Shown piece by piece: positions 2,064 to 46,333 of a stretch of 64,000 nucleotides of DNA (its first letter is position 1; every line of letters starts with the position of its first letter). The position numbers and the translations under genes are program-made. The DNA is taken from the sequence record NC_028829.1; one strand, written 5' to 3'. The notes below the pieces were generated by a model. The model was not told the origin of the DNA, searched no databases, and saw only the letters and a list, made by a program, of their open reading frames with translations.

Positions 2064-2939
2064 TTAAGCACCAATTCGTTCTAACGTTGTTTGACTCAAT
2101 TTCGAATCACTTTGGGCTTCAAGAGAACTAACATCACTCCAAACGGTGATCTCATTTCCATTGATTACCCAGATCTTACCAGAAATCATTGCTATACGTT
2201 GCTCATCATCGTAGAAAAGCTCGTCTTCAGGTTCATAATACCACTCTAACGTGTAAAATGATTTATACCAAGCAACATCATCATTGATGCTACCTGCCGA
2301 AAGTTCAACAATACCAGCTTCGATGTTTAACGAGTGACCGCCACGAAGATACCAAATACCATCACCACCCGTTACTTTAACAATAGCAGCGTCGTTGATT
2401 GTAGGTAAATCGAGCAATTCAGTTCCCATTTCTGTATCATATCCAGTCGGGTTATCAGTGTGAACAGGCTTTGGGTCTTCAATAGGAACGATTCTTTCCA
2501 TCACGAATGACGCACCTTCAGATTCATTTGATACTCTCAATTTGAAACCTAAATCTTTGGCAAATCGTTCAGCCATTCTTTTGTATAATCGAGTACGCTT
2601 ACGGGAATCAGAACGATTTGTGTCATCAAATGCTGCAAATGTGATTCGATTTACGATGTTGTTTTGCATCACGTGCTTAATTTCAGAAATAACCGTGGCG
2701 AAAACAGTCATCGCGTCTTTAGAATCACCTTTTGCTAGGCTGTAATTGTAAGACATTGCACCCGCTGGCTTATGCATAAAATCGACACCTAGAGCTTTGC
2801 GATCTTCTTCATAATACAGACCAATCATATACTCAGCGCCGTCTATTTCGAAGTAACTCTGATTACCACGTCGTGCTGTTATGGGTGCAGCGCGGTTAAA
2901 CGCTTCTGTTAGCTCGTTTTGATATTCGCTAAATTTCAT
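2064..2939 (-). CDS. Putative capsid-internal protein, shared-domain family, paralog 1
   Basis: N-terminus MKFSEYQNELTE resembles the T4 IP capsid-targeting sequence; shares a ~110 aa domain with 2941, 3865, 12076 and 39511. Confidence 0.65.
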   Translation of the reverse strand: MKFSEYQNELTEAFNRAAPITARRGNQSYFEIDGAEYMIGLYYEEDRKALGVDFMHKPAGAMSYNYSLAKGDSKDAMTVFATVISEIKHVMQNNIVNRITFAAFDDTNRSDSRKRTRLYKRMAERFAKDLGFKLRVSNESEGASFVMERIVPIEDPKPVHTDNPTGYDTEMGTELLDLPTINDAAIVKVTGGDGIWYLRGGHSLNIEAGIVELSAGSINDDVAWYKSFYTLEWYYEPEDELFYDDEQRIAMISGKIWVINGNEITVWSDVSSLEAQSDSKLSQTTLERIGA

Positions 2940-2940
2940 T

Positions 2941-3861
2941 TTAAGATTCCATTATTTCTGGGTTTAACCACGGCGCATCGAATGCATTCACATATTTGGT
3001 AAACGCTGCATCGTCGGTGTATATTTTTAGACTTGTTTGACTAGTCAAGACGATATAGAAGTTCTTGAATGCACCAACCAGATATGTTCTATCTTCTTCA
3101 GGACCCTCACCATAGTCGAAAATTGGGTGCTGTAGTGCTGCTAACCATCCCTCTCGGTCAGACATTTCATACACAACGCGATTTACACGTAACCTAGCTG
3201 CAATTTCGTCAGCCGCTTTTACAACTGCACGACCTTGCCCTAGAACACCACTAATCATCGAACCATCTTCAACTTCAAACGCTCTTACAAATGCATATGC
3301 ATTGGCGTGAGATAAATTAACTTCAACATGGTCGCTATGTTCTTCAAACCCGACTGGACGACGTGCTCGACGTGAAAAGTCATCTACACGTTGTTGATAA
3401 CCCACATCATACACAATGAATTCACGACCTACGTTTCTGTAATCATACTGAGGGAATTCTCTAAGTTTCGCCTTTGTCATGATCTTATACAGTCTGAGAC
3501 GTTTATCTGCATCACGCTGATCAGCGTCATTGAACGCGCTATATGTTATTTGAGCAGGTGAATTGTCTCTAACAAAACTGAAAATCGCATCGACAACCGT
3601 TGATAATACGACTCGTGCTGTTTTATCATCTTTCTTAGTTAGATTATAACCACTACCATCAAGAGCTTTGAACGACACATCAGCCTTCATAGACTTCATC
3701 CCGTTCGGTTCACGTATAATGCCTTTCTGAATGTCTATTTCATAATAAACACCATCAACTTGAAACTCATACACGTTTAAATTTGGTAACTCACGGACGA
3801 GATTATATTTCGCTGGTCGATCTAACGACTCGTTGAGTCTTTGATATTCGCTAAATTTCAT
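2941..3861 (-). CDS. Putative capsid-internal protein, shared-domain family, paralog 2
   Basis: MKFSEYQRLNE leader; shared domain; C-terminal GQGRAVVKAADEIAARL resembles GNAT motif A. Confidence 0.65.
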   Translation of the reverse strand: MKFSEYQRLNESLDRPAKYNLVRELPNLNVYEFQVDGVYYEIDIQKGIIREPNGMKSMKADVSFKALDGSGYNLTKKDDKTARVVLSTVVDAIFSFVRDNSPAQITYSAFNDADQRDADKRLRLYKIMTKAKLREFPQYDYRNVGREFIVYDVGYQQRVDDFSRRARRPVGFEEHSDHVEVNLSHANAYAFVRAFEVEDGSMISGVLGQGRAVVKAADEIAARLRVNRVVYEMSDREGWLAALQHPIFDYGEGPEEDRTYLVGAFKNFYIVLTSQTSLKIYTDDAAFTKYVNAFDAPWLNPEIMES

Positions 3862-3864
3862 TTT

Positions 3865-4314
3865 CTACCTTTTATCAAGTCTTTCAAGTGAAATAGAACC
3901 CATGTCATACACAACCTTAAACCCAAGTTCATCAGCAAATCGTTTTGCAATACGTTTGTATACACTAAGTCTCTTACGATAATCATCCGCGTTCGAATCG
4001 CTAAATGCGTTGAAATGTATATAATTTACATCTTTGCTACGCATTAATTCTTCAATTTCAGATATAACAGTTGCAAAAACTGTAATCGCGTCTCTAGCAT
4101 CGCCTTTCGCGAGATTATAGCTCCATGTTAGTGATTCTCTGGACATATACATAAACTCAACATTTATAGATTTATCGTATTCTTCATATGCGAGTTCGAC
4201 GATGTAACGTTTGTCACCGACGTTAAAAAAGCTCTTATTTCCACGACGTGCTGTGATCTGTGCTGGTCGGTCAAATGCTTCTGTTAGCTCGTTTTGATAT
4301 TCGCTAAATTTCAT
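3865..4314 (-). CDS. Putative capsid-internal protein, shared-domain family, paralog 3 (single domain)
   Basis: MKFSEYQNELTE leader; consists only of the shared domain. Confidence 0.65.
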   Translation of the reverse strand: MKFSEYQNELTEAFDRPAQITARRGNKSFFNVGDKRYIVELAYEEYDKSINVEFMYMSRESLTWSYNLAKGDARDAITVFATVISEIEELMRSKDVNYIHFNAFSDSNADDYRKRLSVYKRIAKRFADELGFKVVYDMGSISLERLDKR

Positions 4315-4604
4315 TCTAAAAATTCCCCGTCGGGTATCGTGTCTTTGTCGATATTACCATTCAATGGTAGATCGTCGTCAAGACCGACATCTATTGATTT
4401 TAAATGTATTTCTAAGTCGTCGATTGATTGTTCAGTATAGAGGTACTTGCTTCTGTAATCGAAAAATGAGTAGCAATCTTCAGTGTATTCTACTTTCAAA
4501 ATCGTTTCATGACCTGCATGAACATATACTACGGGGTCGCCGAATGCGCTAATGTCCGTATAACTCATCTTCGTGTTTTTCAATAATGCAATTGCTTCTC
4601 TCAT
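4311..4604 (-). CDS. Hypothetical acidic protein
   Basis: ORF coupled to its neighbours. Confidence 0.6.
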   Translation of the reverse strand: MREAIALLKNTKMSYTDISAFGDPVVYVHAGHETILKVEYTEDCYSFFDYRSKYLYTEQSIDDLEIHLKSIDVGLDDDLPLNGNIDKDTIPDGEFLE

Positions 4605-4607
4605 AGA

Positions 4608-4892
4608 TTAACCTATAAAATTGTTTAATGGGCTGCTCAATCTATCAAGTTCTTCTAATATTACATCACCATGACACGCTTTAGGCTTACAATGACAGCC
4701 GAGAATCTTTCCTTTTAGTTGCATAAACTGCTTTTTAAATTCGTCGTCTTGTAATTGAATGCGTAACCACTCGCGATAAAGCTCAATAACTTCGCTTCGA
4801 GTACCGTCAATCCCTGATTTAAATGGGTTCCCAAACGGGGTGCCGCGACCAATGTACACATCAAAAGAATGATGAGCAATGTTAACTATCAT
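4608..4892 (-). CDS. DUF4326-like protein
   Basis: DVYIGRG..FGNPF and GKILGCHCKPKACHGDV motifs. Confidence 0.8.
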   Translation of the reverse strand: MIVNIAHHSFDVYIGRGTPFGNPFKSGIDGTRSEVIELYREWLRIQLQDDEFKKQFMQLKGKILGCHCKPKACHGDVILEELDRLSSPLNNFIG

Positions 4893-5187
4893 TATTTAGC
4901 ACCACTCTAAACCCAACACCGTGAATGACATTAACACAATCAACAAGACTACCGACAATCGGCACTGCTTTAACTTCAGCACGCTCGTAACCTGCGTATC
5001 GTACAAGCTGAAGAACAACCTTTTCATCACAATCTTTGTACATCGTGTAAGAACCGACTAAGAAGATGTCATTGTCATCGGCTATATTGTTGATGATCTC
5101 TCTTCGAGCGTATCTAGCTGCTTGCGTGCGCATATAACGCTCGAAATCACCATTATCGTTTTTCATTCTATTGATTTGTCGTCTCAT
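4882..5187 (-). CDS. Hypothetical protein (start MRRQIN)
   Basis: GAGGTTATTATG RBS and start. Confidence 0.6.
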   Translation of the reverse strand: MRRQINRMKNDNGDFERYMRTQAARYARREIINNIADDNDIFLVGSYTMYKDCDEKVVLQLVRYAGYERAEVKAVPIVGSLVDCVNVIHGVGFRVVLNNDS

Positions 5188-5216
5188 AATAACCTCAAAA
5201 AGCGCCATAAAGGCGC

Positions 5217-5396
5217 TTACTGTTCTGAATATCTAACACCTTTGAGAAATGCCTCAAGGCAATATTCATTATACGATTCGTAAACAACTTGACCGTTGTC
5301 TTTTATCTGCCAGAGTGATTGATTGTGTTCGTCAATTTCTTCGTTCAGAATGAACCCTTGACGTTCAACCATATCTCGTATTTCATGCTTTCTCAT
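5217..5396 (-). CDS. 59-aa hypothetical protein missed by the ORF track
   Basis: GAGGTTATTATG start, MRKHEIRDMVERQGF...LKGVRYSEQ; same RBS/start string as at 5187. Confidence 0.65.
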   Translation of the reverse strand: MRKHEIRDMVERQGFILNEEIDEHNQSLWQIKDNGQVVYESYNEYCLEAFLKGVRYSEQ

Positions 5397-5440
5397 AATA
5401 ACCTCGTTTTAGAGTGGCGACAATCGCCGCCACTAAATCA

Positions 5441-6817
5441 TTAAAGTACGCGCCCACCGCAATGTTCGCCCTTATCAATCTTAGAGCGTACGTACGGAAC
5501 ACGCTCTTCGCTCAAATCTTTCCAGTATTGATCTGTGTTCGGTGTTGAGTTATGACCGTAGCCGTAGTTATGACCGATTTCGTGTAAGAATACGCGAGTG
5601 TTGTGGTCGTAGTTTGCAAGATCGTACATCTTCGACTCAGACTTGGTGTTTGCCGCCCATGCGAAAATCGCAAAGGTTGTGTGTTCGTCGTATGACGGTG
5701 CAACACCGTAAATTGAAGTGACGCCACCTGAATAACCAGGTGCAGGTAAGTAACCTTCATCGCCTGTCATGATCATGTTCGCACGGCACGACTCGAAGTT
5801 GTTATTGAACCCTGCATATGCTTTCATCGACGCGCCGATCAATGCGTTTTCACGCTGCATCTTCAAAATCTCAATTGCACGCACTGAACTGTATTCATAC
5901 AGTGGAATACGACCTTCCAAGTGAGGGAAGTTTCTCAGGTCATCAGTCTGCGGTGAGTAAGTCTGATATAGACCAGAACTGTTACCAGTCAGAATCGGTT
6001 CAATTAAGCCTAGTTTGTAACCAACTTGTACTGAGTTCGAGTTCACTTGTTTTTGCCATGTTTCCCACCACTTCGGGTCTGCCATGTGGAAGTATGATAG
6101 ATTACCATCACCACCCATCCCGGGGATTAATGTCGCGTTCACCATCAAGTACGGACGGTCAAACGTCTTATTCGCTTGATCAATCGATGTCTTGATGCTT
6201 GATAGATCTTCAGTTGTGTGTAACCAGTTCAACGCTTTAATCCAGAAGCCTGCCAGATCACCACCGTAGTTCATGTCGTTAACTGTGTAACATACACGTT
6301 TACCGAGCTGATAACGACAGCTCTCGCGGCGTAAGTTTGCCCAACCCACATCAAGCGAGCCGTTTACATCAAACTTGCTTGAGTCTGCATTCATGCGAAG
6401 CGTGTATTCAAAGCCGTTATCAAAACATGCGCTACCTGATACAGAACATGCCCACTTCAATGGTGCCATAGCAAGTGTACTAAGAGCACGCATATCATCA
6501 CTTGGTGACATTGTACGCATGTCTGTTGAATCTTTCCAGAACCCGTAACCGTTACTGTCCATCGAAATGTAAGTGCTATTGACGGTCTGACTGATTTCAC
6601 CGGTTTTCTTATACTCAGCGTCAGCTTCTTGCATCGCGCTGTTTAACCAGGTACGTAACACTGAGTTGTGATAACCGTTCGTCATATGAGGGAACGTGAA
6701 CTCAGTTGTGAAAGGACTCGGTGTTTCGACACCTTCAGCCGGTAGTCCCGTGAATGTAGCCGCTGTCGTTGACGCAGTAGAACATAACAATGCTAATGAA
6801 AGCCAAAGTTTTTTCAT
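5441..6817 (-). CDS. Secreted metzincin-type zinc metallopeptidase
   Basis: Sec signal peptide MKKLWLSLALLCSTASTTAA; HEIGHNYGYGH fits HExxHxxGxxH. Confidence 0.7.
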   Translation of the reverse strand: MKKLWLSLALLCSTASTTAATFTGLPAEGVETPSPFTTEFTFPHMTNGYHNSVLRTWLNSAMQEADAEYKKTGEISQTVNSTYISMDSNGYGFWKDSTDMRTMSPSDDMRALSTLAMAPLKWACSVSGSACFDNGFEYTLRMNADSSKFDVNGSLDVGWANLRRESCRYQLGKRVCYTVNDMNYGGDLAGFWIKALNWLHTTEDLSSIKTSIDQANKTFDRPYLMVNATLIPGMGGDGNLSYFHMADPKWWETWQKQVNSNSVQVGYKLGLIEPILTGNSSGLYQTYSPQTDDLRNFPHLEGRIPLYEYSSVRAIEILKMQRENALIGASMKAYAGFNNNFESCRANMIMTGDEGYLPAPGYSGGVTSIYGVAPSYDEHTTFAIFAWAANTKSESKMYDLANYDHNTRVFLHEIGHNYGYGHNSTPNTDQYWKDLSEERVPYVRSKIDKGEHCGGRVL

Positions 6818-8925: not shown

Positions 8926-8954
8926 TATTAACCTAAATAAGTAATACAGTCAAC
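8926..8954. promoter_or_regulatory. Overlapping divergent promoters: early (-) and candidate late (+)
   Basis: Minus strand TTGACT-17 bp-TAATAT; plus strand CCTAAATA at 8932..8939 inside its spacer. Confidence 0.55.
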
Positions 8955-12030: not shown

Positions 12031-12070
12031 ATGATACAAAAAAGGGCTGACATCTGTCAACCCTTTTTTT
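12031..12070 (-). promoter_or_regulatory. Early promoter fused with a terminator hairpin (PeSL-like)
   Basis: TTGACA-18 bp-TATCAT; the -35 box lies in the stem GGGTTGAC...GTCAGCCC, which is followed by T6. Confidence 0.8.
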
Positions 12071-12075: not shown

Positions 12076-13527
12076 TTATTCTTCGTCTTCGTCGTCTTTG
12101 TACTCAGATACATCAACGCCGTTTTCTTCAGCAAGCTCAATAAGTGCTTCATCAAATGACGGACCGAAGTTACCATTTATAGCGTATTCAAACACTTCTT
12201 CTTGATATGGATCTGAGTTATTCATCAAGAACTCAGCAGCTTCGCGACCCTCTAACCCCAGTACGTTAAATACCGCACCAATTGCAGATTCGCGAACATC
12301 TTCGTCATGGTCTGCTAGAAGTTCATCAACTCGATAACCTTGCTCGGCTACGTATTGGCGTTCTTCGTAATCATCTGTATCATCGACCATTCTATCCCAG
12401 ATATCTTCTGCCATATCACGACCGAATTCACTTTCGTAGCGTTTCGCATATGTGATACGTGTATCTGCGTCGTCGTTCTCGAAAGACCATTCCCATGCCG
12501 CTTCGCGCACGTCCTCGTCCGAGTCAAGAACAAGATCCCAGATAGCAAAACCATTTTCAGCAGCTTGCTTACGATGTTCCCCTTCATCAGATGTTGCAAG
12601 TTTCTCACCCATTTCGTAATCAGAGGCAATAACTGCATTACGAACGTCTTCGTCATCATGGAAAATCAGCTCTTCGTGCATCAGACCCCAACTAGCAATA
12701 CGAACTAGAGTTTGCCAATCTGCGTGTTCAATGATTTCATCTTCACGACCTTCATTGATCCATGCTTCGATTTGGTATTGATCTGCTTCATCGACGTAAT
12801 CTTCAAGAGACGGACCGCCACCGAATGCAGTGTCGTAGCTGCTAGGACGTTCGTGTTCATTGGTAAGAGTAAACGAAACTGAACCGCTCATACTCATCAA
12901 CGCTTGGTTAACGTCGTTGTCGCTCATTGAAAGAATGCTGCGCGTCACGTTCTTACGAACAGAACGGAAATCGTTTGCACCACCTGCTAGACGTGCAAGC
13001 CAGCGGTCGCTAATCTCAGTCGAATAGCCATATTCTTTACCGAAAGTCAGTGACAGTGCGTAGTACAGCATTGGACGGGAAATCAAGTCTTTCAATAGCT
13101 TTTTCTTACTTTCTTCGTCTAAGCGAGTTGCTTCGCGTCGATTGTTATTCAGTGCGTAGTACTCATGATTTGCTGGTAGCTCGTACGCTGCGCTGAAGTC
13201 ATATTCATACGGCTTCATGCCCATTTCTTCTTCATACGTCTCGGTGAACTCACGTAGAGTCGTCAATACACCAGAGAATACCGCAGCCGCAGAGTGTCCC
13301 GCTTTACCAGTCTGAGCATAACCACCAGAGTTCTGGAATGTGATTGAGAAATAACCAGGGTTGCTTTCGTCTACGCTAACCGAGAATCCTTCCCCCGCTG
13401 CGTTGAATCGCGCTGAAGTCTCGCCCGTCCCGTTCTCATGACCCCAATCCCAATCAATGTCGATATTCGCACGATCAGAAATCTCATCAAGGCGAACTTC
13501 TTGATAAAATTCGTTAAATTGTTTCAT
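12076..13527 (-). CDS. Putative capsid-internal protein: shared domain plus acidic HEAT/LRV-like repeats
   Basis: MKQFNEFYQEVRLDE leader; repeats LIFHDDEDVRNAV, LVLDSDEDVREAA, LLADHDEDVRESA; TCTAAATA box at 13556..13563. Confidence 0.65.
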   Translation of the reverse strand: MKQFNEFYQEVRLDEISDRANIDIDWDWGHENGTGETSARFNAAGEGFSVSVDESNPGYFSITFQNSGGYAQTGKAGHSAAAVFSGVLTTLREFTETYEEEMGMKPYEYDFSAAYELPANHEYYALNNNRREATRLDEESKKKLLKDLISRPMLYYALSLTFGKEYGYSTEISDRWLARLAGGANDFRSVRKNVTRSILSMSDNDVNQALMSMSGSVSFTLTNEHERPSSYDTAFGGGPSLEDYVDEADQYQIEAWINEGREDEIIEHADWQTLVRIASWGLMHEELIFHDDEDVRNAVIASDYEMGEKLATSDEGEHRKQAAENGFAIWDLVLDSDEDVREAAWEWSFENDDADTRITYAKRYESEFGRDMAEDIWDRMVDDTDDYEERQYVAEQGYRVDELLADHDEDVRESAIGAVFNVLGLEGREAAEFLMNNSDPYQEEVFEYAINGNFGPSFDEALIELAEENGVDVSEYKDDEDEE

Positions 13528-13575
13528 TTAATTAACCTTTTAATGTTGTTTCTTCTATTTAGACAAAACAAAAAA

Positions 13576-13601
13576 ATCCCGTCGGTTAAGACGGGATTTA
13601 A
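13576..13601 (-). terminator. Intrinsic terminator
   Basis: AATCCCGTC...GACGGGATT stem with a T run on the minus strand. Confidence 0.8.
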
Positions 13602-22941: not shown

Positions 22942-23322
22942 TTAACCGCCAATTTTATATTTGTAACGTAAATTCCAGTTTTTAGAATCACGGAACGAAA
23001 TAACTCGAAACTTATTATCGCCAGTAAATTCGTGCGACTCAGGGTGCGCGATCTTACATAGATTCCAATCTTCAAGTAATTTAGCAATGTTATTACGACG
23101 CTCAATATCTTCGTCTGTTATTTCAACGCAACGACCGTCAAGTGCTAAAAGCTCTTTAAAATGTACGAGGAAATAAACGCCACGTTTCTGAAGAATATGG
23201 CACGATTGATATAGAGTATTTGTTTTGTTGTTCGCGATGCCGATTCGCGTTAATGTCTCGCGAATCTTTAGAAATGCATCGTCGTCTGGTAATTGAATTT
23301 CAAGTTTGTTAATAATGTCCAT
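22942..23322 (-). CDS. regA: Translational repressor RegA
   Basis: FLKIRETLTRIGIAN, LYQSCHILQK, HFKEL. Confidence 0.95.
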   Translation of the reverse strand: MDIINKLEIQLPDDDAFLKIRETLTRIGIANNKTNTLYQSCHILQKRGVYFLVHFKELLALDGRCVEITDEDIERRNNIAKLLEDWNLCKIAHPESHEFTGDNKFRVISFRDSKNWNLRYKYKIGG

Positions 23323-23356
23323 GATTAATCTCAACAGCATAATAAAAATATATTTA

Positions 23357-23851
23357 TTAGCGTGTTAAGCCCCCCGTTCGTGAGTCGTACCATTCTTGTA
23401 ATTGATTCAACTCTTCGGGCGTTAGACGATTTGAAATACTAATTGCATGTGATTTATTGACGTTGTATACATCAACAATTAGATCAACATAGTCATATTT
23501 CGGTTCTTTTGCCCATGAATTGAATCGCTTACCTTTACGAACTGCATGATACAAATAATCATATTGCATTTCATTCGGTAACTTACTACCAACCGAATCC
23601 ATGATATACGCATGAAGAACTGTATCGATGCCGTTGCTCAATGCGCGATTCACCATAAATGGTAGATATTGCTCATCAACAACCGCATCTGGTAAACGTT
23701 TCTTCATGTAGATACTGTCAACGAAATCAAACGGTGAATATTTCTCTGCTTTCTTCGCTTTCTTCAGCTCTTCTTCGTATTCTTTTTCTTCTTCAGCGAT
23801 TCTCGCTTCAGTTTCTTCGCCTTTCGCTAGGAATTCAAAGATGTCCATCAA
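23357..23851 (-). CDS. 62: Clamp loader small subunit gp62
   Basis: FMVNRALS...YDYL...V.KGKRF..WAK; synteny. Confidence 0.9.
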   Translation of the reverse strand: MMDIFEFLAKGEETEARIAEEEKEYEEELKKAKKAEKYSPFDFVDSIYMKKRLPDAVVDEQYLPFMVNRALSNGIDTVLHAYIMDSVGSKLPNEMQYDYLYHAVRKGKRFNSWAKEPKYDYVDLIVDVYNVNKSHAISISNRLTPEELNQLQEWYDSRTGGLTR

Positions 23852-32261: not shown

Positions 32262-32909
32262 TTATTTTGTCCAAACTACCGAAGCACCTGAACCAGATTT
32301 CTTGTAACCGTACTTTGAAAGGTCTGGAATACGTTGAAAGCTGTCTTTCGCTGTAACTACACCGCGAGTAGCAATTTCTTTAGCCACGTCTCTTGTTGCA
32401 TTACCTGCTTCAATCTGCATAGACAGATCTGGATATTCTTGAGCAATGAATTGCATCATGATATCGTTTTTGCTTTTACCACTGATCACGTTCAACACAG
32501 TTTGAGTAATGTCAGTACCGCGAGTGATATGGAAAACTTTACCACGAGCACGAGACTCAACATCACGAATAATCTCTGCTTCGACTTCTTCAGGTACAAC
32601 GTTCAGTACGTAAGAAGTAAACGCCGTATCGAATGATTCCCCATTTGGGATAGTCAGACTGACATCAGTCCAACCATCAGAAGATGTACCATTGAATTTG
32701 TCATATGCATACGTTTTGATGCCTTCAGAGCGTAAAAATTCAGCGTTACGACCGTATTTACCAGCACCATAGTCAAGAGCAGTACCACCCGGTGTAAACA
32801 TACCTTTTTTGTATAGTTTAACTAGTGCTGCTACTTCTTTACCACGTATCGACGTTGCTGCGGAACTGTACTTTTGTACTTCAGTTAAAAATTCACCAAA
32901 TTGCTTCAT
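32262..32909 (-). CDS. Class I SAM-dependent methyltransferase with a capsid-targeting-like leader
   Basis: ALDYGAGKYG motif I, YAYD, FD..FTSYVLNVV; MKQFGEFLTE start at 32909. Confidence 0.8.
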   Translation of the reverse strand: MKQFGEFLTEVQKYSSAATSIRGKEVAALVKLYKKGMFTPGGTALDYGAGKYGRNAEFLRSEGIKTYAYDKFNGTSSDGWTDVSLTIPNGESFDTAFTSYVLNVVPEEVEAEIIRDVESRARGKVFHITRGTDITQTVLNVISGKSKNDIMMQFIAQEYPDLSMQIEAGNATRDVAKEIATRGVVTAKDSFQRIPDLSKYGYKKSGSGASVVWTK

Positions 32910-32916: not shown

Positions 32917-34362
32917 CTACTTAATATCAATATCAATCAGATAGTTCGTTGCGTTAACGCTGAACTCAATCAAAGTACCGTCAACCGAAACGTCAACGCC
33001 GTTTTCAACGATGTTTTCCATCATCGAGTAAAGTGTTTCTTGATCAAGCATCGCTTCAGAGAAAGATTGACCAACCTTGAATGAACTGAACTGATCATTT
33101 GCAAGAGCACGAATCAGTGAATCAACATCATCAACCATTTCAGTCACTGGACGTAGACTAGACATGATATTCGGGTGGAATACACGATTCGACTCAGCCA
33201 TTGTTGAAAATGCAGTCACTGTTTGACGCTCAGGGGTAACACAACCATCGAACGATAGCATAGCTTCAGCAAATGCTTTACAGTCAAAACGTTTCACGCC
33301 TTTACGTTCCATCATCGCAATCATATCAAGAAGCGGGTAACCTGCTTCAGATAATTCAACGCGATATTCTTCACACACACGACCTGCACGCATAGCATGT
33401 TCCGCGTTTGTTAGAACAATACTTGTGTTGTTGTGTTTCAGCTTCCAACCGTTGTCAAAATACGCTTCTTTCACATCAACAAGATTTTGCCATGCAGTCG
33501 ATGTCAGTGGCGCAGTCGCGATTTCTTTCGTGAAAACGTTCTGAGCATGTTCAATCATGGTGATGTTCTGTTTCAGATCGTATGCTTTGAAGCCTTCTAG
33601 CATCGGCAAGCCAGTATCGTCTTTACGTTCACGAGCGTATGATACGTCTTTCGCTTCTTTTACAATGAACAAGTCCATGATTTTACGGTTCAGTGCAGCC
33701 AATGTCAGTGCATTTTTACCAGACTTGATTTTCATCTCAGTGATGTCAGACAGTTCAGCTTTTGAGTCAACCGATTCAACAGTCACATAAACGTCACCAA
33801 GCTCGATGTTTTCAGCCATTGACAGTACTTCGGAGGCTGAATTGTCGTCGATTGATAGCGATTCAATTACAAGCTTATCAGAATCAGCAAGATTAATTTT
33901 CATTTCACGCATAGGGAAAACAACGTGAATGTCATTTTTCTTATAACCAAGCTTAGTCGCTTCAGCAACAACTTGATCTAAGTAACCGCCTTTAATCACG
34001 ATGCTAGGAAGACGCGCTTCAGTACACATGATCATAGACTTAACTTGCTGTAGCTCATGTGCTGGCAATGATAAGAATTCGTTTTCCATAAGCAAGTTGA
34101 TTGTGCTTACGTTCTCGCTCAGATTGATATCGAAGTTTTTCTCATCGACGTTTTTATCTTCAGCAAGTTTAGTACTCATGATAGATTTAAGCTCATTTGC
34201 CTTTTCCATCATGCCGATAGTTGTTTCAACGCCTTTGCCTTTGCTGAACTCAGTAGATGCAGTGCCTAGCTCAACAATAACTTGACCAAACTTAGGGTAG
34301 ATTTTACCACCCTGAGTTTGACGGCGATTTTCACTCAGAAATGAGTCAAAGTTACCTAACAT
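32917..34362 (-). CDS. Putative capsid-internal protein, possibly a degenerate P-loop kinase
   Basis: MLGNFDSFLSE leader; IYPKFGQVIV followed by a non-canonical Gly loop. Confidence 0.5.
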   Translation of the reverse strand: MLGNFDSFLSENRRQTQGGKIYPKFGQVIVELGTASTEFSKGKGVETTIGMMEKANELKSIMSTKLAEDKNVDEKNFDINLSENVSTINLLMENEFLSLPAHELQQVKSMIMCTEARLPSIVIKGGYLDQVVAEATKLGYKKNDIHVVFPMREMKINLADSDKLVIESLSIDDNSASEVLSMAENIELGDVYVTVESVDSKAELSDITEMKIKSGKNALTLAALNRKIMDLFIVKEAKDVSYARERKDDTGLPMLEGFKAYDLKQNITMIEHAQNVFTKEIATAPLTSTAWQNLVDVKEAYFDNGWKLKHNNTSIVLTNAEHAMRAGRVCEEYRVELSEAGYPLLDMIAMMERKGVKRFDCKAFAEAMLSFDGCVTPERQTVTAFSTMAESNRVFHPNIMSSLRPVTEMVDDVDSLIRALANDQFSSFKVGQSFSEAMLDQETLYSMMENIVENGVDVSVDGTLIEFSVNATNYLIDIDIK

Positions 34363-34371: not shown

Positions 34372-34884
34372 TTAATCGTAAAATTTCTGTAAGTTAAGTG
34401 GTTCTTTCTGTTCATCTGGTTGAGCTTTAGCAGTCTTGCCAGATTCGTAAGAATTGACACGTTCTAACATCTGTTGAAGAAAATCGAAATCAGTTTCTTC
34501 ACCATCAATCGAGTAGTTAGACGAATCACATAAGAATACTTTATATTTAATCGCTGTATCTTTTCTTTCTTTCTTAATACGTTGTACAAACGCATTGAAG
34601 CAAATACGAGTGATATAAGCGTGTGGGTTGTTATACTTGTCAGTGTCGAAGTTCTTGATATAGCGCAAGCAATGTTCGATTGCGTCACCAATCATCTCTT
34701 CTTTCCAGGTTGCAGTATACCCACTAAAATTGTAACGGCGAGATAAATTCTCGCTGATCTTCATGATACTGATTGCTACCACGTCAGGGACGGGAATTGC
34801 AGCATCAGGGTGTTTCTTCATTTCGCTTTTCCATTCGCATAAAGATGCGTACAGGGCTTTATTATCTACATAATGATTTTTCAT
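34372..34884 (-). CDS. 55: Late sigma factor gp55
   Basis: HYVDNK.LY, FSGYT.TWKEEMIGDAIE, NPHAYITRICFNAFVQRIKKE. Confidence 0.97.
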   Translation of the reverse strand: MKNHYVDNKALYASLCEWKSEMKKHPDAAIPVPDVVAISIMKISENLSRRYNFSGYTATWKEEMIGDAIEHCLRYIKNFDTDKYNNPHAYITRICFNAFVQRIKKERKDTAIKYKVFLCDSSNYSIDGEETDFDFLQQMLERVNSYESGKTAKAQPDEQKEPLNLQKFYD

Positions 34885-34892
34885 GTCACACC

Positions 34893-35792
34893 TTATACCG
34901 TTACTGCGTGAGTGTATGACAGCTTAGAACTGTTCGCAAGAACACCAAGATTATCCCAATCGATTTCAACTGCACCCGTTTGATTATCTTCTAATGGTGC
35001 AACGGTCAATGCGTATCGAGCAATCACACCGTAAATTGGGTGGAATGATTTTGAGTCTTGTGTTTTATATTGATATGCAATACCAGCGTCTGTTGCTTTG
35101 TCAAAGTTGTATGGGCTGAATACTAAACTTGAGATTTCATAATCACCAAGTTCTTTCTTAACACCAATTGTTACGTAGTCAGTCGTTGCATACTTGTCAT
35201 GAACTAGATATAACCCAGAGTCACATTTATACATGCTAGTATCACCAATCTGTGTAGCCATACCAGTGCCCGTCAATAGACCAAATGCTTCACCACCTGC
35301 TACGATATATGTACCTGTACAACCCGTTGACTTTTCAATCTCAGCAGCAGATGCATGGACGAACGAGTATAATTCTCGACCTTTATCAAAACGGTTAGTA
35401 ATAGCAGATAGCGTAATTGCACTACCAACAGTTGAAATACTGTTTAGTGCATCGATGATATTAGTGTTGATGTCATCTGCGATTTGATCAGCAATAGAAT
35501 CTGTGATAATCGATTCATTGACACCAAGTGCTTGCATGTCTTGAATTGTTTCAAGTGAGATTTCAGTTTTTAGCTTTGATGATTGAACTTGTGCATACCA
35601 GCGATCAAGTCTAAAACCATGTGGCAGCCACCCACTCGCGTCATCAGCTTCAGCTACAGATTTGAAACCGAACGCAGTCGCAACCGGTTGAGTTGTTGGC
35701 TGTTCTGAAACGATTTGCGTAAATATTAACGGGTATAGTCGTTTTTGAACAGAAACAATGTCTGGTAAACCGTTACTATTAGATACAGTCAT
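34893..35792 (-). CDS. Truncated gp23/gp24-like capsid protein paralog
   Basis: KRLYPLIFTQIVSEQPTTQPVATAFG and FSPY...FHPIYGVIARYAL resemble T4 MCP motifs; TATAAATA at 35849..35856. Confidence 0.7.
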   Translation of the reverse strand: MTVSNSNGLPDIVSVQKRLYPLIFTQIVSEQPTTQPVATAFGFKSVAEADDASGWLPHGFRLDRWYAQVQSSKLKTEISLETIQDMQALGVNESIITDSIADQIADDINTNIIDALNSISTVGSAITLSAITNRFDKGRELYSFVHASAAEIEKSTGCTGTYIVAGGEAFGLLTGTGMATQIGDTSMYKCDSGLYLVHDKYATTDYVTIGVKKELGDYEISSLVFSPYNFDKATDAGIAYQYKTQDSKSFHPIYGVIARYALTVAPLEDNQTGAVEIDWDNLGVLANSSKLSYTHAVTV

Positions 35793-35847: not shown

Positions 35848-36087
35848 TTATTTATATGTCTGGTTATCAACCCATTGCTTGAGTTCTGGAAGATGACCTA
35901 TGTATGTATCACCATGCATAGCAAGAGGCACGCGAATGTTGCGCACCCCACCAAGTTTCTCATGCAATTTATCGATATCAGATTGAGACTGTAACTCTAT
36001 TACAGTGTACGGGACGTTTTTGAACTTACAGAGGGAAATTGCGTGACGACAGCCGTCACAGTTGGGAATTGTGTATATCGTTATCAT
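35848..36087 (-). CDS. Glutaredoxin (NrdC/NrdH-like)
   Basis: CDGC active site, VP, IG. Confidence 0.9.
   Translation of the reverse strand: MITIYTIPNCDGCRHAISLCKFKNVPYTVIELQSQSDIDKLHEKLGGVRNIRVPLAMHGDTYIGHLPELKQWVDNQTYK
35849..35856 (-). promoter_or_regulatory. Consensus T4 late promoter
   Basis: TATAAATA upstream of the capsid-like gene. Confidence 0.8.
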
Positions 36088-37694: not shown

Positions 37695-37852
37695 AATTAT
37701 TCTCTCTGTTCGTTAATTCGTTTCGATGAAGCTATATTAGGTCTATATTGTTTTTCGTGCAACCTTTTTCTTACAAAAAGTTTAAAATAATTTCAACGGG
37801 TGTTATGAGCAATCATAAATACACATATATTTCTAAAGGGTGAGTCTATAAA

Positions 37853-40398: not shown

Positions 40399-40440
40399 TT
40401 TATTGTCTCTCTAAATGAAAGTATTTATACGCACAAACGC

Positions 40441-40464
40441 AAAAAGGGGCATAAGCCCCCTTTA
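40441..40464 (-). terminator. Terminator after DNA ligase
   Basis: GGGGC-TTAT-GCCCC with a T run. Confidence 0.8.
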
Positions 40465-42233: not shown

Positions 42234-42296
42234 AATTAACCCAAAAAAGCCCCGACAGGAGCTTTATTATATGATGAATGTAAGACGTGTTAAACT

Positions 42297-42890
42297 TTAT
42301 TCGTGAATAAAATCTAATAGCTTTGACATATGATGAACGTCTGCTCGTTCGTCATATCGATTGAGGTGTACCACTTTAAGGTCGTGAAAACACTTCTTGA
42401 TTTGCTCAGTATTTTCTAACTGATCATCAATGAAACCGATCACGTCGTGATCTGATACTAGCTGAGAGACATAACCGACTTTGCTCTCATCACCGCGAAT
42501 AGTAATCAATTCGCTGAAACAACCCGGGAAGAATGTTTCTAAGTTGAACTTGCGCACAAGCCAGTGATCAGTTGAATCACCGAATTTAGTCAGCGCAACA
42601 AGATTGTATTCTTTCGCGATTTTGTGAACGTTCTCTACCGCATCAGGGAACGCAGTCATGTACTTACCGTGCTCAAGATTATACTTCTCAAGTAAGTCAA
42701 ATGCTATTGAACGCTGCTCGACACCGAATAAATCACGTACGTCAACATGCTCTTTAGCAGTGAAGTGTTTTAATGCAAGAACGGGGTCGATACCACATCG
42801 CTTGCAGAATAGCGGTAGCTGGCTTGCCCAATCAATAAGCACACCATCAACGTCGAAAATTAGAGTAGGTTTTTGTTTCTTGTCTGTCAT
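42297..42890 (-). CDS. HAD-family phosphatase (T4 30.2-like)
   Basis: FDVDGVL, FIDD; upstream of gene 30. Confidence 0.85.
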   Translation of the reverse strand: MTDKKQKPTLIFDVDGVLIDWASQLPLFCKRCGIDPVLALKHFTAKEHVDVRDLFGVEQRSIAFDLLEKYNLEHGKYMTAFPDAVENVHKIAKEYNLVALTKFGDSTDHWLVRKFNLETFFPGCFSELITIRGDESKVGYVSQLVSDHDVIGFIDDQLENTEQIKKCFHDLKVVHLNRYDERADVHHMSKLLDFIHE

Positions 42891-42903
42891 AATATATTTC
42901 TCG

Positions 42904-43101
42904 TTACATATATTCAGCGCCCGTGAAGGCAATGAACATAAAAGTAAAACAAAACACAGCAACAGCTACTAACAATGCAGTTACACTAGCTATCATTGAA
43001 TCGAATTCGTCTTCAATAATCTTATTGACTACATATACTAATGGCGTTGCTGATACGAATACTAGAATAACACCTAGTGTTGCTAATAAAATTTGAATCA
43101 T
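42904..43101 (-). CDS. Two-TM membrane protein
   Basis: Two hydrophobic helices. Confidence 0.55.
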   Translation of the reverse strand: MIQILLATLGVILVFVSATPLVYVVNKIIEDEFDSMIASVTALLVAVAVFCFTFMFIAFTGAEYM

Positions 43102-43127
43102 ATTGTGCTCCTTTATTTGAAGCATCT

Positions 43128-43164
43128 ATGATAATGAAAAGGGCTGCAAATTGCAACCCTTTTG
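43128..43164 (-). promoter_or_regulatory. PeSL-like promoter/terminator
   Basis: TTGCAA-17 bp-TATCAT; stem GGGTTGCAA/TTGCAGCCC plus T4. Confidence 0.75.
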
Positions 43165-43165
43165 T

Positions 43166-44209
43166 TTATTTCATCCACTGTTTGCGCTTTTTAGAGCGTT
43201 TCCACCCGCGCTGTGGAGATTTGTAAGACGATAGACCATCCCAATCTAGAAGACAGCGAACTGTATGAGCACGTTTTTTGCGAACTACTTTACCGTATTC
43301 GGCTTCAATCTCGTCTTCACAGAACTTGTTATGATGCATTTCAGACATCAAACCGTTACCGCGTCGAGCATGAATCCAGTTCTTGTAGCAACCAGTATGT
43401 GGCACTGGCGTGTAACGAAACACGTAGTTACCTTTGTAACGTGCTAGACATTCACCATTCCGAATTAGGTCAATCATACGTCTTGCGCTAGTTGACATGT
43501 AAAACCCAACACGTTCTGGGCTCCAGAAGCTCTGATAACGAACGTATGTTCTAGCCCACTCTGGTACCCATTCACCATCCCATAATTCGAAAACATGATG
43601 AGGTCCCATTTCGCGTGAGTTGTATAGTGGTAGATCTTTTTCTTTTACGCCTTTGTATTTTTTGACTTCAGTCATCGTTGTTTCTCCAAGTTAAATTACT
43701 TAGTGAAACAACTCCTTACGATGAAATTTCTTCATTATTCAATTACCTCATACGCTTCGTTAAGGAAGTCATCAACATCATCTACGTTGATTTTGTCTTC
43801 ATCTATTGCTAGTAAATCACATAGCAATTCTAAAATATCATGTTTACGAATTGTCCCATGACTGAATACAGTCTGACCAATCCATTCGGCTACCGACCAG
43901 TAATAGTCTTCAAAATCACCATCGCATTCGTAATTTGCTAGGTTGTACTGCTCTAGAAGCATATTCAAATCGTGCGTCATTGTATTACCTTTTATTGTTT
44001 TATTTGACGCACGTATTTAATCATTTAATTTTGAACAATTTCATCACGATTAGAGCAATCATTAGTACTGGCGTGATGACTGTTGATAATAAATTCACCA
44101 CGCCTTTACTCGATTGACCACCGTTTTGGCGGTACGTTTCGTGTAATGTATCTTGAATCGCAACTGTCAAAAGTGCACCAATCAATAAGTAAACAAAAAT
44201 AAAAGTCAT
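43166..44209 (-). other. Three hypothetical ORFs (44021..44209 membrane, 43735..43980, 43166..43675 basic)
   Basis: ORFs with RBS. Confidence 0.55.
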
Positions 44210-44934
44210 ATGTCGAAAATCCTAAGCCCATATTCTGGGTTTTCTGAGCCGTATGCACGTGGGTTACACAGTACATTACAGCCATTTACGTGATAGTCAA
44301 ATTCTTGATGAACATGACCGTGAATTGCAAAACTGAACCCTTCAAGTAAATGGTCAAGGTCAGTGCAATAAAAACTATTCGTACTTGAATACGCATAGTA
44401 AGATGAAATGCTCTTCAGAGAAGGGGCGTGATGTGTGATTAACACTTTCTTACCTTCAATCTCGCGACATTTCTCAATAAATTTGACTGATTTACAATGA
44501 AGTGCATGTACATCTTCACCGTACAAAGGTCGCCATTGCGGACCGCGAATCTTACGACGGTCATTCATGTTGTCTTTCCAACGTTGACCCTCAAACCAGT
44601 CATTGACTTCGTGCCACAGCGTAGTTCCGCAGAATGTCACGTCGTCAATCTGAACTGTATTTTCAAGCAAGACGTGAACATTGTCAACCGAAGTTTCAAA
44701 TTTATGTCGCTCGTGAATCGCAAGACCCCACCAATCGTGATTTCCCGGCACTGCGATAACAGCGCGCCAACGGTCGGCTACAGCTTCTAAATCGCGCACT
44801 GTGCGCCCTTTGCTGTTAATGTCACCCGCTACTACCAATACAGCGTCTTTGTCGCCTGTAATCGATTCTAGCGCGTTCTCTGCGTGATAGTCGTTGTGAA
44901 TATCACTACAGTAATAAACTTTTAAATTTGCCAT
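44206..44934 (-). CDS. Calcineurin-like metallophosphoesterase
   Basis: SDIH, AGD, GNHD, THHAP, HGHVH. Confidence 0.92.
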   Translation of the reverse strand: MANLKVYYCSDIHNDYHAENALESITGDKDAVLVVAGDINSKGRTVRDLEAVADRWRAVIAVPGNHDWWGLAIHERHKFETSVDNVHVLLENTVQIDDVTFCGTTLWHEVNDWFEGQRWKDNMNDRRKIRGPQWRPLYGEDVHALHCKSVKFIEKCREIEGKKVLITHHAPSLKSISSYYAYSSTNSFYCTDLDHLLEGFSFAIHGHVHQEFDYHVNGCNVLCNPRAYGSENPEYGLRIFDI

Positions 44935-46333
44935 CGAATCTCCAAAATGTTATCGACATAAAATGCGTTGTAGTTGTGTAAACGCAGATATTCAATCAAT
45001 AGACGTTTCATGCTATGACTTTCAATACCTGGCAATTCGTCTTGCATTCTGATATTAATACCAAAGCGCATTTCATCAGTTGCTTGTGCAATGCGCTCAT
45101 CTAGATGTTCTAGATCATCAACGGGAAACTTCTCTTCCATTACTTTGATGCTGCGTGCGCGTGCTTCTTCTGCTTTCATAATCATGCTCATGACTTTCGC
45201 CTCCAGTCAATTATAGTCAATATCATGCGTTCAGAACCGTGTTCCATCAACATACGATTCACATAAGCAAGTGCTAAACTGTGAGTCTCGTATTGCAAGT
45301 AGCCAATTTCTGACGGCTCGTGAGGGTTGATTCGATTTTTAATATCGAATGTATTCTTCACTGCTCTGATATTGTAACCTAATTTCTCGAACTCTGCAAC
45401 CGCTGATTCATAAAATTCAGCTTTTATACCGACTTTTATCTCAAGCTCTGTATCAGCTATTTTATCAATTGATTTCAAAGTGTTATACAGAAAATCTTGA
45501 AATTCTTCGATTTTCTTTAACTGACGGTCGGACGGTTGCTTCGGCTTATAGCGTGACCGCATACTAGCAGCATCAAACATAATATTTTCTCTCAGAAGTA
45601 GTCAGCGTACCTATCTAAGATTCGCTTCGGGATTTTTAAGTTTACAAATCTCTTACCTTTCAAACCACCATCATATGCGATTTCTGCAATCAGATCTTCG
45701 TACATGTCTGGTTCAAGTTCGTCGATAATGTCCTTGTACTCTTGTGGAAGCTGTCTCTTCAGCTTCTTAACGAGCGCGTGAATCTCATTTATCGTGAGAT
45801 CACGCAACTCTTGGTATGTCATTTCGTTTAGGGATATTTCAATAAAAGACTTTAGCATAATGCCACCTCCGTCTCTTATTTAATCCCTAGTAGCTTACCA
45901 ATTACGGTCATTGGTAGATAAAAAATGACATAAAACAAAATGTAAATCGCAATCTGTACGCCGAAACCTAGTGATAGCATAGCGACGTAAAGCTGCACGA
46001 GGTAATAATCTACCTCGGCTGTCGCTGCTTCGTTCAGTTCGCCGCGAAACTCGCGACACATATCTTCTAGAATTCGAATGAAATTGCTCATTACCACATC
46101 ACCTCAAGTTTCTCACCTGTAATGAACGCATCATAGCCGAGACTAATCAAAATACTACGAATAGTATCGCGCTCACTTTCAGTCAATTTTTCTGTTTTGA
46201 AGTCAACTCGCGACTTCGTGGGAGAAGCGACTTGAATTGCAAAATCTAGCTCTTCAAGTGACTTCTCAACAGCAGGCGAAAGTTTCTTCCGCTTTGCTCT
46301 TGCCTCTTTTGCTGTAATCATTGGGTCATCCAA
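44922..46333 (-). other. Small hypothetical ORFs 46091..46333, 45876..46097, 45592..45858, 45188..45580, 44922..45191
   Basis: Coupled ORFs; 45592..45858 has an MLKSFIEISLNE leader and ATTAAATA at 45877..45884; 46091, 45188 and 44922 share an (M)xAxxxRx(K/R) start pattern. Confidence 0.55.

Follow-up and report, generated by a model that had tools for sequence, protein, structure and literature searches.

A candidate set of T4-type head-targeted proteins in the Vibrio phage ValKK3

That T4-like phages load varied proteins into their heads by means of a targeting sequence is an idea already published (PMC9026906). [quoted passage not shown] In the giant phages phiKZ and SPN3US, ejection proteins are processed by a T4-like prohead protease, and many head-internal proteins, including paralogue families, lose propeptides after a glutamate (PMC5694885). 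Finally, the polyvalent proteins of phages and conjugative elements (Iyer et al. 2017, PMC5512222) bear payloads that, by prediction, accompany the DNA into the host.

The window considered here, 64,000 nucleotides long, corresponds to positions 62001-126000 of the record (NC_028829.1) of Vibrio phage ValKK3, which is KVP40-like and T4-related. It holds about ten leader-bearing genes (Table 1), and further ones lie elsewhere in the genome. The ten N-termini quoted in the original prediction, which read the leaders as capsid-delivery tags, were each found exactly where it placed them, the true start of the ORF given at 32262 (-) being 32909, in agreement with the annotation; all seven TAAATA hexamers are likewise present and match its NNTAAATA coordinates. 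Their location among early genes is also borne out, as the neighbours serve replication and nucleotide metabolism and, with few exceptions, lie on the minus strand. It is fairly likely that the ten genes encode T4-type head-targeted proteins that are made late, targeted by their leaders, cleaved and retained in the capsid. We infer that, after late transcription and synthesis, a short N-terminal targeting propeptide would carry these proteins into the prohead core, where the gp21-type prohead protease would trim them after [L/I/F]-x-E; the trimmed products would stay within the DNA-filled capsid, like T4 Alt and the internal proteins, and would then be ejected and might act on the host. Observed directly are the motifs and their conservation, the domain homologies and folds, the sites that look like promoters and terminators, and the protease gene. 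This mechanism of head targeting is already known, and the enlarged T4-type set would add members to it. Two architectures are present: six proteins have a leader plus a DUF6934-like module, and four have a leader placed directly on another domain.

Table 1. Leader-bearing genes and associated sites, in window coordinates.
Feature	Position	Strand	Description
Terminator-like hairpin	2029..2054	-	Closes ORF149-ORF145 block
ORF145, 291 aa	2064..2939	-	Leader to LTE-12; DUF6934-like (residues 1-149, E 8e-31); uncharacterised C-terminal domain
ORF146, 306 aa	2941..3861	-	Leader to LNE-11; DUF6934-like (E 5e-25); uncharacterised C-terminal domain
ORF147, 149 aa	3865..4314	-	Leader to LTE-12; DUF6934-like only (E 3e-30); minimal member
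TAAATA box	4893..4898	-	6 nt before ORF149 start
TAAATA box	8934..8939	+	38 nt upstream of ORF158
ORF158, 351 aa	8972..10027	+	MIIFE leader; HExxH and HEINAR motifs; neighbours on opposite strand
Sigma-70-like site	12031-12060		After ORF163
ORF163, 483 aa, pI 4.18	12076..13527	-	Leader to LDE-15; DUF6934-like (residues 1-175, E 1e-8); HEAT-like repeats
TAAATA box	13556..13561	-	34 nt upstream of ORF163
Strong terminator-like hairpin	13574..13599	-	Directly upstream of ORF163 late box
ORF195, 215 aa	32262..32909	-	Leader MKQFGEFLTE; class I SAM-methyltransferase fold
ORF196, 481 aa, pI 4.8	32917..34362	-	Leader to LSE-11; N-domain akin to zeta-toxin-type P-loop kinases
gp24 (head vertex) and gp55 (late sigma)	34372..35792	-	Directly upstream of ORF196 and ORF195, one tight block
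TAAATA box	35849..35854	-	62 nt upstream of gp24
TAAATA box	37816..37821	+	37 nt upstream of Alt
Alt homologue (ORF202), 542 aa	37853..39481	+	Leader to LNE-9; DUF6934-like N-domain (residues 1-117); C-terminal ADP-ribosyltransferase
ORF203, 295 aa	39511..40398	-	MIIFE then LFE-12 leader; DUF6934-like (E 8e-29); uncharacterised C-terminal domain
TATAAATA-type (TAAATA) box	40422..40427	-	29 nt upstream of ORF203
Terminator-like hairpin	40443..40463	-	Between DNA ligase gene and ORF203 late box
ORF215, 88 aa	45592..45858	-	Leader to LNE-12 (FTE in 6E35.1a)
TAAATA box	45877..45882	-	24 nt upstream of ORF215

The window members stand apart from the T-even internal proteins: at 149-542 aa most are large, besides being acidic or neutral and resembling enzymes or having several domains, whereas those of T4 are small and basic according to a review (PMC9026906), which counts against head targeting. 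Moreover, the window genes are scattered among early genes instead of lying in an ip locus, and the similarity is confined to the leader, T2 Ip4 belonging to DUF7412 and not DUF6934. The phiKZ and SPN3US propeptides, often longer than 100 residues and ending in A/S/G-x-E, are likened to the ValKK3 leaders in their processing rather than in sequence. The polyvalent proteins share the payload repertoire (ADP-ribosyltransferases, methyltransferases, zincin peptidases and kinase-like domains) but join 2-15 domains in one polypeptide (PMC5512222), whereas the ValKK3 payloads are separate, each with its own leader. As for T4 Alt, whose propeptide up to ITE-6 (PMC5694885) is short and has a hydrophobic-x-E end, as does the ValKK3 leader up to LNE-9, ORF202 shares the Alt-type domain and is the true Alt-like ADP-ribosyltransferase that had been predicted. 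However, the Alt family profile aligns only to its C-terminal 266 residues, the N-terminal domain being a weak DUF6934-like match (E 3e-4), and LHE and LSE near the end do no more than hint at C-terminal processing. The gene adjoins that of DNA ligase on the opposite strand and has a late box, a likeness to T4, where alt adjoins gene 30.

Whether the leaders exceed chance depends on how they are defined. A plain [LI]-x-E occurs in the first 15 residues of 27 of the 109 window genes and, being common, is weak evidence. The loose pattern of an aromatic residue plus L-x-E is found at 51 of 339 N-termini, where shuffling gives 25 +/- 4.4, and in 6.9% of internal windows; its enrichment is thus only about two-fold, and among its false positives are DNA polymerase, gp44, gp62 and a pilin-like protein. 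A stricter scan, trained only on the leaders of T2 Ip4, Ip7 and Ip5 (MH751506.1) and hence independent of the earlier gene choice, returned six ValKK3 N-termini scoring at least 25 (0.33 expected), those of ORF195 and ORF163 among them, and 11 scoring at least 20 (1.8 expected), a clearly positive result. The leaders of ORF195 and ORF163 almost match the three T2 ones, and the proposed likeness to the capsid targeting sequence defined by experiment in T-even phages holds. The top three matches fall outside the window in a variable locus beside the tRNAs, 57A and gene 1, syntenic with the T2 ip locus. By the same scan, Alt, ORF203, ORF158 and ORF215 do not have T2-like leaders, which counts against head targeting. 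Across three divergence tiers, including KVP40 and 6E35.1a, [L/I/F]-x-E is kept in all ten leaders while its middle residue varies. Nevertheless, ten genes do not amount to ten independent events, since a homologous N-terminal domain is common to six.

Late-promoter boxes are associated with the leader genes, as had been proposed: TAAATA stands at -15 to -75 of five of the ten leader genes and of 5 of the 99 others (Fisher p = 4e-4), and such boxes precede 26 of 112 structural-region genes versus 1 of 118 early-region genes. ORF163 and ORF203 each have a terminator and then a late box. The box before ORF149 may be where late transcription of the closely spaced ORF148-147-146-145 begins, judging from the box and the gene packing, and that before gp24 may do the same for gp24-gp55-ORF196-ORF195; both would reach leader genes only by read-through across several other genes, which counts against the proposed reading.

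What is new here is the make-up of ORF145, ORF146, ORF147, ORF203, ORF163 and Alt, in which a leader and a DUF6934-like domain of ~130 residues precede differing C-termini: an ADP-ribosyltransferase, acidic HEAT-like repeats (in ORF163, as anticipated), two or three uncharacterised domains, or nothing. The E-values come from a profile made only from external sequences. The notion of a delivery tag fits the four unrelated domains, whereas in these six the whole homologous module recurs. Because one carrier domain, hitherto uncharacterised, is fused to different payloads in six proteins, ValKK3 probably packages a varied set. The domain is GNAT-like and has 862 representative relatives, and fold search connects it with several phage proteins that carry Alt or ART annotations. 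Its conserved start is L-x-E followed by A-F-D-R-P, which hundreds of relatives have at their very N-terminus; in the 6E35.1a orthologue of ORF203, the fastest-evolving of the ten, I-F-E still abuts A-F-S-R-P despite a deletion. Stand-alone relatives start with T-even-like leaders, and one adjoins another leader-bearing small gene. Some relatives elsewhere are multi-domain or tandem, the tandem ones repeating the L-x-E junction. As L-x-E followed by A-F-D-x-P also occurs internally in proteins of this family, it could be a structural element and no cleavage site. In the ORF147 model (pLDDT 85.6), the leader is a helix of residues 3-14 that spans the proposed cut, which counts against cleavage. 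The ORF163 leader itself is T-even-like (T2-scan score 25).

Among the four remaining proteins, the payload predictions largely stand for three: the methyltransferase fold of ORF195, the kinase-related domain of ORF196, whose P-loop is degenerate, and the zincin-like ORF158. The ORF195 leader is the closest to the T2 ones within the window (score 28); in the model, residues 1-17 have pLDDT below 50 and thus lie outside the fold, and the protein, 215 residues long, has a single [LI]-x-E, at position 10. Most of 30 aligned ORF195 relatives have a short leader ending in [LIF]-x-E; the gene of one is found 8 kb downstream of a portal gene of T4 type. The ORF196 relative KP15_200 combines a T-even-like leader with a late box and is oriented opposite to its neighbours. 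In the ORF158 family, HExxH and HEINAR are invariant, as is E5 of the leader, down to ~20% identity. ORF215 is the weakest member (T2-scan score 14).

The genome encodes a gp21-type prohead protease with 48% identity to T2 gp21, and the gp23 propeptide region contains L-I-E followed by A-F-N and L-N-E followed by A; the first 25 residues of gp24 lack [LI]-x-E, so the protease may obey other rules than in T4, which counts against the proposed cleavage. Taken as a whole, the original interpretation is partly supported: it gains from leader likeness, conservation, late boxes, protease and payloads, and loses from the module shared by six, from the core-like conservation of five and from the idea being already published. 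The proteins might instead be late-expressed but non-virion, acting late in the cytoplasm, with the motif being an intrinsic structural element (the first DUF6934 helix or an amphipathic N-terminus) or arising incidentally from codons favoured near the start. The internal recurrence of the domain motif, the single ORF147 helix and the frequency of the loose pattern in unrelated enzymes speak for this, and a literature search found no virion proteome or other proteomic data, N-terminal sequence or transcript map for any KVP40-like phage. It is nonetheless unlikely, as it leaves unexplained the near identity to T2 leaders on unrelated folds (methyltransferase, zeta-like), the extreme N-terminal placement in hundreds of relatives and the disordered ORF195 leader, and the family of the Alt homologue is known to be packaged (PMC5694885, PMC9026906).

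Less probable again is that these are prohead-core or scaffold accessories, targeted and cleaved but mostly degraded or expelled, which help to build the long KVP40-type head and are not effectors. ORF163 (pI 4.18), ORF196 (4.79) and ORF145 (4.74) are indeed acidic like gp22 (4.52), ORF196 and ORF195 come immediately behind gp24 and gp55, the prohead protease also cuts gp67 and gp68 of the T4 core (PMC9026906), and gp68 of ValKK3 begins with a similar leader. ORF195, ORF196, ORF163 and ORF215 are also conserved like core genes; with ORF158 they match ordinary core genes and are not fast-evolving arms-race genes, which counts against the main reading. Yet the leader proteins have an ordinary or low [LI]-x-E density (0.5-2.2 per 100 residues versus 4.96 in gp22), ADP-ribosyltransferase, methyltransferase and HExxH folds are unexpected in a scaffold, and the DUF6934 paralogues evolve fast, with copy numbers of 3, 2 and 1 in three phage groups. 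Highly improbable, and already disfavoured, is chance combined with paralogy, in which duplicated genes and a common L-x-E mimic a family: the ten include three tandem paralogues, one domain recurs in six and a quarter of N-termini have L-x-E, but against this stand the T2-trained scan, the late-box association and the conservation of the leader by four unrelated domain families in distant relatives.

The ten genes considered here (ORF145, 146, 147, 158, 163, 195, 196, 203 and 215, together with ORF202, the Alt gene) are most economically read as an expanded repertoire of head-targeted proteins of the T4 type, a reading that we regard as probable. Head targeting by a capsid targeting sequence (CTS), trimming by gp21, the packaging of Alt and the diversity of internal proteins among T-even phages are established. 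The window belongs to Vibrio phage ValKK3 (KP671755 / NC_028829), a 248-kb KVP40-like phage of the genus Schizotequatrovirus, with which its DNA polymerase gene is 100% identical, and it has the same orientation as positions 62001-126000 of that record. Nearly all of its 109 annotated genes lie on the minus strand, and they are mostly dedicated to replication or nucleotide metabolism, or are small unknowns. The ten N-termini quoted in the original prediction all match the sequence, and all seven of the TAAATA boxes listed there (7/7) were found in place; the gene given at 32262 has the N-terminus described for it, but its true start is at 32909, as annotated.

The leader is a short N-terminal stretch that ends in [L/I/F]-x-E, and its recognition depends strongly on how it is defined. 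A bare [LI]-x-E is present within the first 15 residues in 27/109 window genes, and a loose rule combining an aromatic residue with [LIF]-x-E fits 51/339 N-termini, compared with 25 +/- 4.4 when residues 2-20 are shuffled, as well as 6.9% of internal windows. Both patterns were dropped as criteria because they are too unspecific, DNA polymerase, gp44, gp62 and a pilin-like protein also fitting; the genome-wide link of the loose pattern to late boxes is marginal (p = 0.048). An independent yardstick was provided by the annotated ip4, ip7 and ip5 genes of phage T2 (MH751506.1), whose leaders were read from the record: over their first ten residues, Ip4, Ip7 and Ip5 nearly coincide with ORF195 and are close to ORF163. 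Each ValKK3 N-terminus was scored against these three leaders, with the expectation taken from internal windows (99th percentile of the null, 17). Six N-termini score at least 25 against 0.33 expected, and 11 score at least 20 against 1.8 expected. The enrichment of the loose pattern, by comparison, is genuine but only 2-fold.

By this score, CTS-like leaders are carried by ORF195 (28), ORF163 (25) and ORF145/147 (20), with ORF196 being borderline (17); none was recognized in Alt, ORF203, ORF158 or ORF215 (14 or less), whose hydrophobic-x-E starts seem closer in kind to the T4 Alt propeptide, of 6 residues with ITE (PMC5694885). The gp21 cleavage motif (L/I)-x-E closes the leader in 10/10 cases, at residues 5-15. 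When two tiers of divergence were compared, namely KVP40 (Alt 69% identical) and Vibrio phage 6E35.1a (Alt 46%), [L/I/F]-x-E proved to be kept in every leader in both phages, with a variable middle residue and one L to F change. In the 6E35.1a orthologue of ORF203, seven leader residues are gone and I-F-E still abuts A-F-S-R-P. Internal [LI]-x-E sites are clearly depleted in ORF195 and ORF158 only, not across the whole set. ORF231, a false positive of the loose pattern and a gene type that is odd in a phage, has counterparts in KVP40 and 6E35.1a carrying the same annotation.

TAAATA boxes, which are candidate late promoters, give a second line of evidence. TAAATA at -15 to -75 precedes 26/112 genes in the two structural regions (gp23, gp22, sheath, tube, baseplate and fibres) and 1/118 genes in the early region (1-50 kb). 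Within the window, the genes preceded by such a box are ORF158 (box at 8934), ORF163 (13556), Alt (37816), ORF203 (40422), ORF215 (45877) and five others including gp24, so that 5/10 leader genes have it as opposed to 5/99 of the remainder (p = 4e-4), which upholds the association originally proposed. The other five leader genes have operon-level boxes only: ORF145-147 lie in a tightly packed block that is downstream of one box and is closed by a terminator, and ORF196 and ORF195 come after gp24 and gp55, downstream of another, such that read-through from these two boxes would reach them. In both ORF163 and ORF203 a terminator-like hairpin is found immediately 5' of the box, and ORF163 is followed by a sigma-70-like site that is near consensus; the two genes look like late-only cassettes inserted in early transcription units. 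A box also lies ahead of regA, which hints that this translational repressor gene may have a late promoter.

The same genome encodes the prohead protease and core proteins, and its gp21 homologue aligns with T2 gp21 from end to end at 48% identity. Given this identity, and since the major capsid protein contains L-I-E/A-F-N and L-N-E/A in its propeptide region (the slash marking the junction), it is plausible that the ValKK3 protease shares the T4-type specificity.

Downstream of their leaders the proteins are diverse, each carrying at most one payload. Alt reaches 24.2 bits on Pfam ADPrib_exo_Tox (cutoff 23.4) and matches PHROG 802 'Alt-like' at E 1.4e-88, characterizing it by sequence as a genuine Alt-like ADP-ribosyltransferase. 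ORF195 has 232 relatives in the protein collection, Methyltransf_23 being found in 18/30 of those sampled; its model (pLDDT 89) has 161 PDB matches at E <= 1e-3, of which the best 50 are all methyltransferases, with modest TM-scores of 0.35-0.54, and the glycine-rich SAM loop D-x-G-A-G-K is invariant in 30 relatives. The predicted fold is therefore that of a class I SAM-dependent methyltransferase, and ORF195 a putative enzyme. A short leader ending in [LIF]-x-E is present in most of its relatives down to 35-40% identity, two of them having leaders nearly identical to the T2 type, and one relative is encoded on the same strand as a T4-type portal gene, 8 kb further downstream. One relative, from a 72-kb contig with many glycan enzymes, is found behind two additional methyltransferase-like genes. 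ORF158, a candidate zincin metallopeptidase, contains HExxH and a downstream HEINAR motif, both invariant in 16 relatives, and its E5 is invariant even at 20% identity; no match was obtained for it in Pfam, NCBIfam or PDB sequences. Its distant relatives P0285 and P0286 are fused to a NUDIX domain. The N-domain of ORF196 shares 27% identity with the Klebsiella phage KP15 protein KP15_200, which has a T-even-like leader, a late box and an orientation opposite to its neighbours. KP15_200 passes Pfam Zeta_toxin (30.6 bits, cutoff 22.3), whereas ORF196 is itself unmatched in Pfam and has an insertion in its P-loop region, without an intact Walker A. ORF196 is therefore related to Zeta-toxin-type P-loop kinases and probably inactive; the disrupted P-loop makes the earlier label 'pseudo-kinase' a reasonable one. 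Neither single-sequence nor profile searches of PDB sequences yielded a match for ORF195, ORF158 or ORF196, and a search of NCBIfam gave no matches. Finally, ORF163 is very acidic and has HEAT-like repeats of the D-E-D-V-R type.

Several of these payloads follow a common N-terminal module of about 130 residues, the DUF6934-like domain. ORF145, 146, 147 and 203 are paralogues, as is ORF276, which is encoded beyond the window among the head genes and in which the domain is internal and N-L-T-E/A-F-D-R-P stands just before it. Scored directly on DUF6934 (PF22028), the window proteins reach 17-18 bits, under the cutoff of 27. When the four window copies were made into a profile and searched against 1.84 billion proteins, 862 representatives matched at E <= 1e-3; these relatives score 31-163 bits on PF22028, and some have GNAT domains too. 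A word-indexed search with the 149-residue ORF147 returned one near-identical protein only, because of its length window. An external profile of 30 relatives, none from ValKK3, was searched against all 534 ValKK3 ORFs of at least 60 residues and matches ORF276, 145, 147, 203 and 146 at 3e-36 to 5e-25 (5e-25 to 8e-31 for ORF145, 146, 147 and 203 alone), ORF163 at 1e-8 (residues 1-175) and Alt at 3e-4 (residues 1-117), the next best in the genome being 0.085. Thus, six of the ten share leader plus domain and differ downstream. Because the relatives match PF22028 and the external profile finds the window proteins, the latter may be divergent DUF6934 members or a sister family. With hhalign, the DUF6934 profile gave a probability of 24-33% for Alt and a negative result for ORF196. 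The ORF147 model (pLDDT 85.6) weakly resembles GNAT-like PDB domains and shows clear likeness to predicted viral proteins (40 matches at E <= 1e-3), including four annotated as Alt or ART, a zeta-toxin-domain protein, a ParB-like protein, a 'structural protein' and a deaminase-domain protein with two copies.

Among the relatives, the domain occurs stand-alone (about 150 residues), at the N-terminus of proteins of about 290 residues, or repeated in tandem, with two to five copies, within proteins as long as 2200 residues. Stand-alone relatives open with a T-even-like leader followed by A-F-D-K/R-P, the glutamate being invariant in 34 sequences, and one such gene is followed by a small gene that is also leader-bearing. 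In the tandem proteins, [LIVFM]-x-E/[AS]-[FL]-D-x-P precedes most domain copies: P0122 has four to six of these junctions, P0131 has three and P0134 has four, but none was found in the five-copy P0136. We tentatively propose, as an idea with distinctly less than even chances, that the domain is a widespread carrier of capsid-internal proteins in T4-like and other large phages, constituting the N-terminal part of Alt, bearing swappable enzymes and forming cleaved tandem polyproteins. Such a carrier would enter the prohead behind a T-even-type leader, with C-termini comprising an ADP-ribosyltransferase or HEAT-like repeats here and zeta-kinase, deaminase or ParB-like domains elsewhere, and tandem arrays would be cut by the prohead protease at each L-x-E/A-F-D-x-P junction. 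If the head-targeting reading of the ten genes holds, this would be the first functional context for DUF6934, with its hundreds of uncharacterised relatives, and for the N-terminal half of Alt. Apart from one incidental mention, nothing was found in the literature on DUF6934.

The most divergent window genes (1st-28th percentile) include ORF203, ORF145, ORF147 and Alt, and tandem copies number 3, 2 and 1 in three phage groups; ORF195, 196, 163, 215 and 158 show average to high conservation relative to other window genes, so that the look of an arms race appears confined to the former group.

Other explanations have to be set against this evidence. Chance plus paralogy could draw on the domain shared by six of the proteins and on the commonness of L-x-E, and has against it the T2-trained excess and the association with TAAATA boxes; it is very improbable. 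Late cytoplasmic proteins in which the N-terminal motif is structural are an unlikely alternative, to be read beside the ORF195 model, where residues 1-17 lie outside the fold. A role as core or scaffold accessories, with cleavage and subsequent expulsion, is quite unlikely, enzyme-like folds not being expected of scaffold proteins. Head-targeted proteins are the preferred reading. That they are ejected and act before transcription as enzymes or counter-defence proteins is graded lower, at somewhat under even chances, and would follow by analogy with Alt, IPI and IPIII (PMC9026906, PMC9391042).

A recent review suggests that the CTS may allow T4-like phages to load varied proteins (PMC9026906), and packaged multi-enzyme 'polyvalent' proteins have been described (PMC5512222). 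The window set resembles the latter in repertoire but differs in architecture, given the 2-15 effector domains per polypeptide of polyvalent proteins (PMC5512222). No account of such leaders in KVP40-like phages came up in a literature search that did not include the KVP40 genome paper or the T4 genome review. As CTS targeting and gp21 trimming are established for T4, what is new is the added membership of a CTS-type set and one lead, the DUF6934 carrier; the advance is one of scope and membership, not of principle. If the reading is correct, KVP40-like phages would deliver a pre-made protein set much larger and more enzymatic than that of T4. In the window it would comprise at least two payloads, of ADP-ribosyltransferase type or unknown, that share a carrier, together with a methyltransferase and proteins resembling a kinase and a metallopeptidase. 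A simple sequence rule would then serve for predicting capsid cargo in marine T4-like phages, namely a T-even-like leader and a late box in a genome that also encodes a gp21-type protease.

Locations of features in the window and in fetched genome loci (L-numbers)
Feature	Location	ValKK3 position	Strand	Characteristics
Terminator	window 2029-2054			closes ORF145-147 block
TAAATA box	window 4893			upstream of ORF145-147
ORF152	window 5441-6817		-	458 aa; signal-peptide-like start
TAAATA box	window 23322-23360		-	~34 nt upstream of annotated regA start
TAAATA box	window 35849			upstream of ORF196 and ORF195
ORF210	window 43735-43980		-	81 aa; pI 4.05; TAAATA box 39 nt upstream; L-L-E ending at residue 10
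ORF225	window 51199-51492		-	T2-leader score 22 (Y-T-F-E-E-I-L-G-E); without late box
ORF231	window 53408-53611		-	67 aa; type IV pilin/pseudopilin-like start, G-F-T-L-I-E then hydrophobic helix
ORF272, ORF275, ORF276	L003 18673-21731	144673-147731	+	between two pip-like genes near head cluster; ORF275 pI 9.5, leader ending L-T-E-7, late box; ORF276 pI 8.4, MSIIFE start, C-terminal DUF6934 domain
gp20, 67, 68, 21, 22, 23	L003 25237-30600			prohead protease and core proteins
ORF327, ORF330, ORF339	L007 20300-32200	about 196300-208200		small; leader and late box each
ORF358	L008 1355-2464	226654-227763	-	annotated poly(ADP-ribose)-polymerase-like; T2-leader score 22, ending L-V-T-E; TAAATA box upstream
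ORF195 relative	L015 8851-10693			behind two methyltransferase-like genes

At least nine further candidates are found elsewhere in the ValKK3 genome. Within the window, ORF210 is a possible additional head-targeted protein, and neither KVP40 nor 6E35.1a has a gene of the size of ORF152 in the syntenic position. ORF358 is possibly a second packaged ART, and the basic ORF275 and ORF276 look like internal-protein genes. Finally, the three top T2-leader scorers lie outside the window, in a 26-tRNA cluster beside gene 1 and 57A, the position that the ip locus occupies in T2; ORF327, ORF330 and ORF339 are located in or just past this cluster, and their region corresponds in position to the ip locus of T-even phages.
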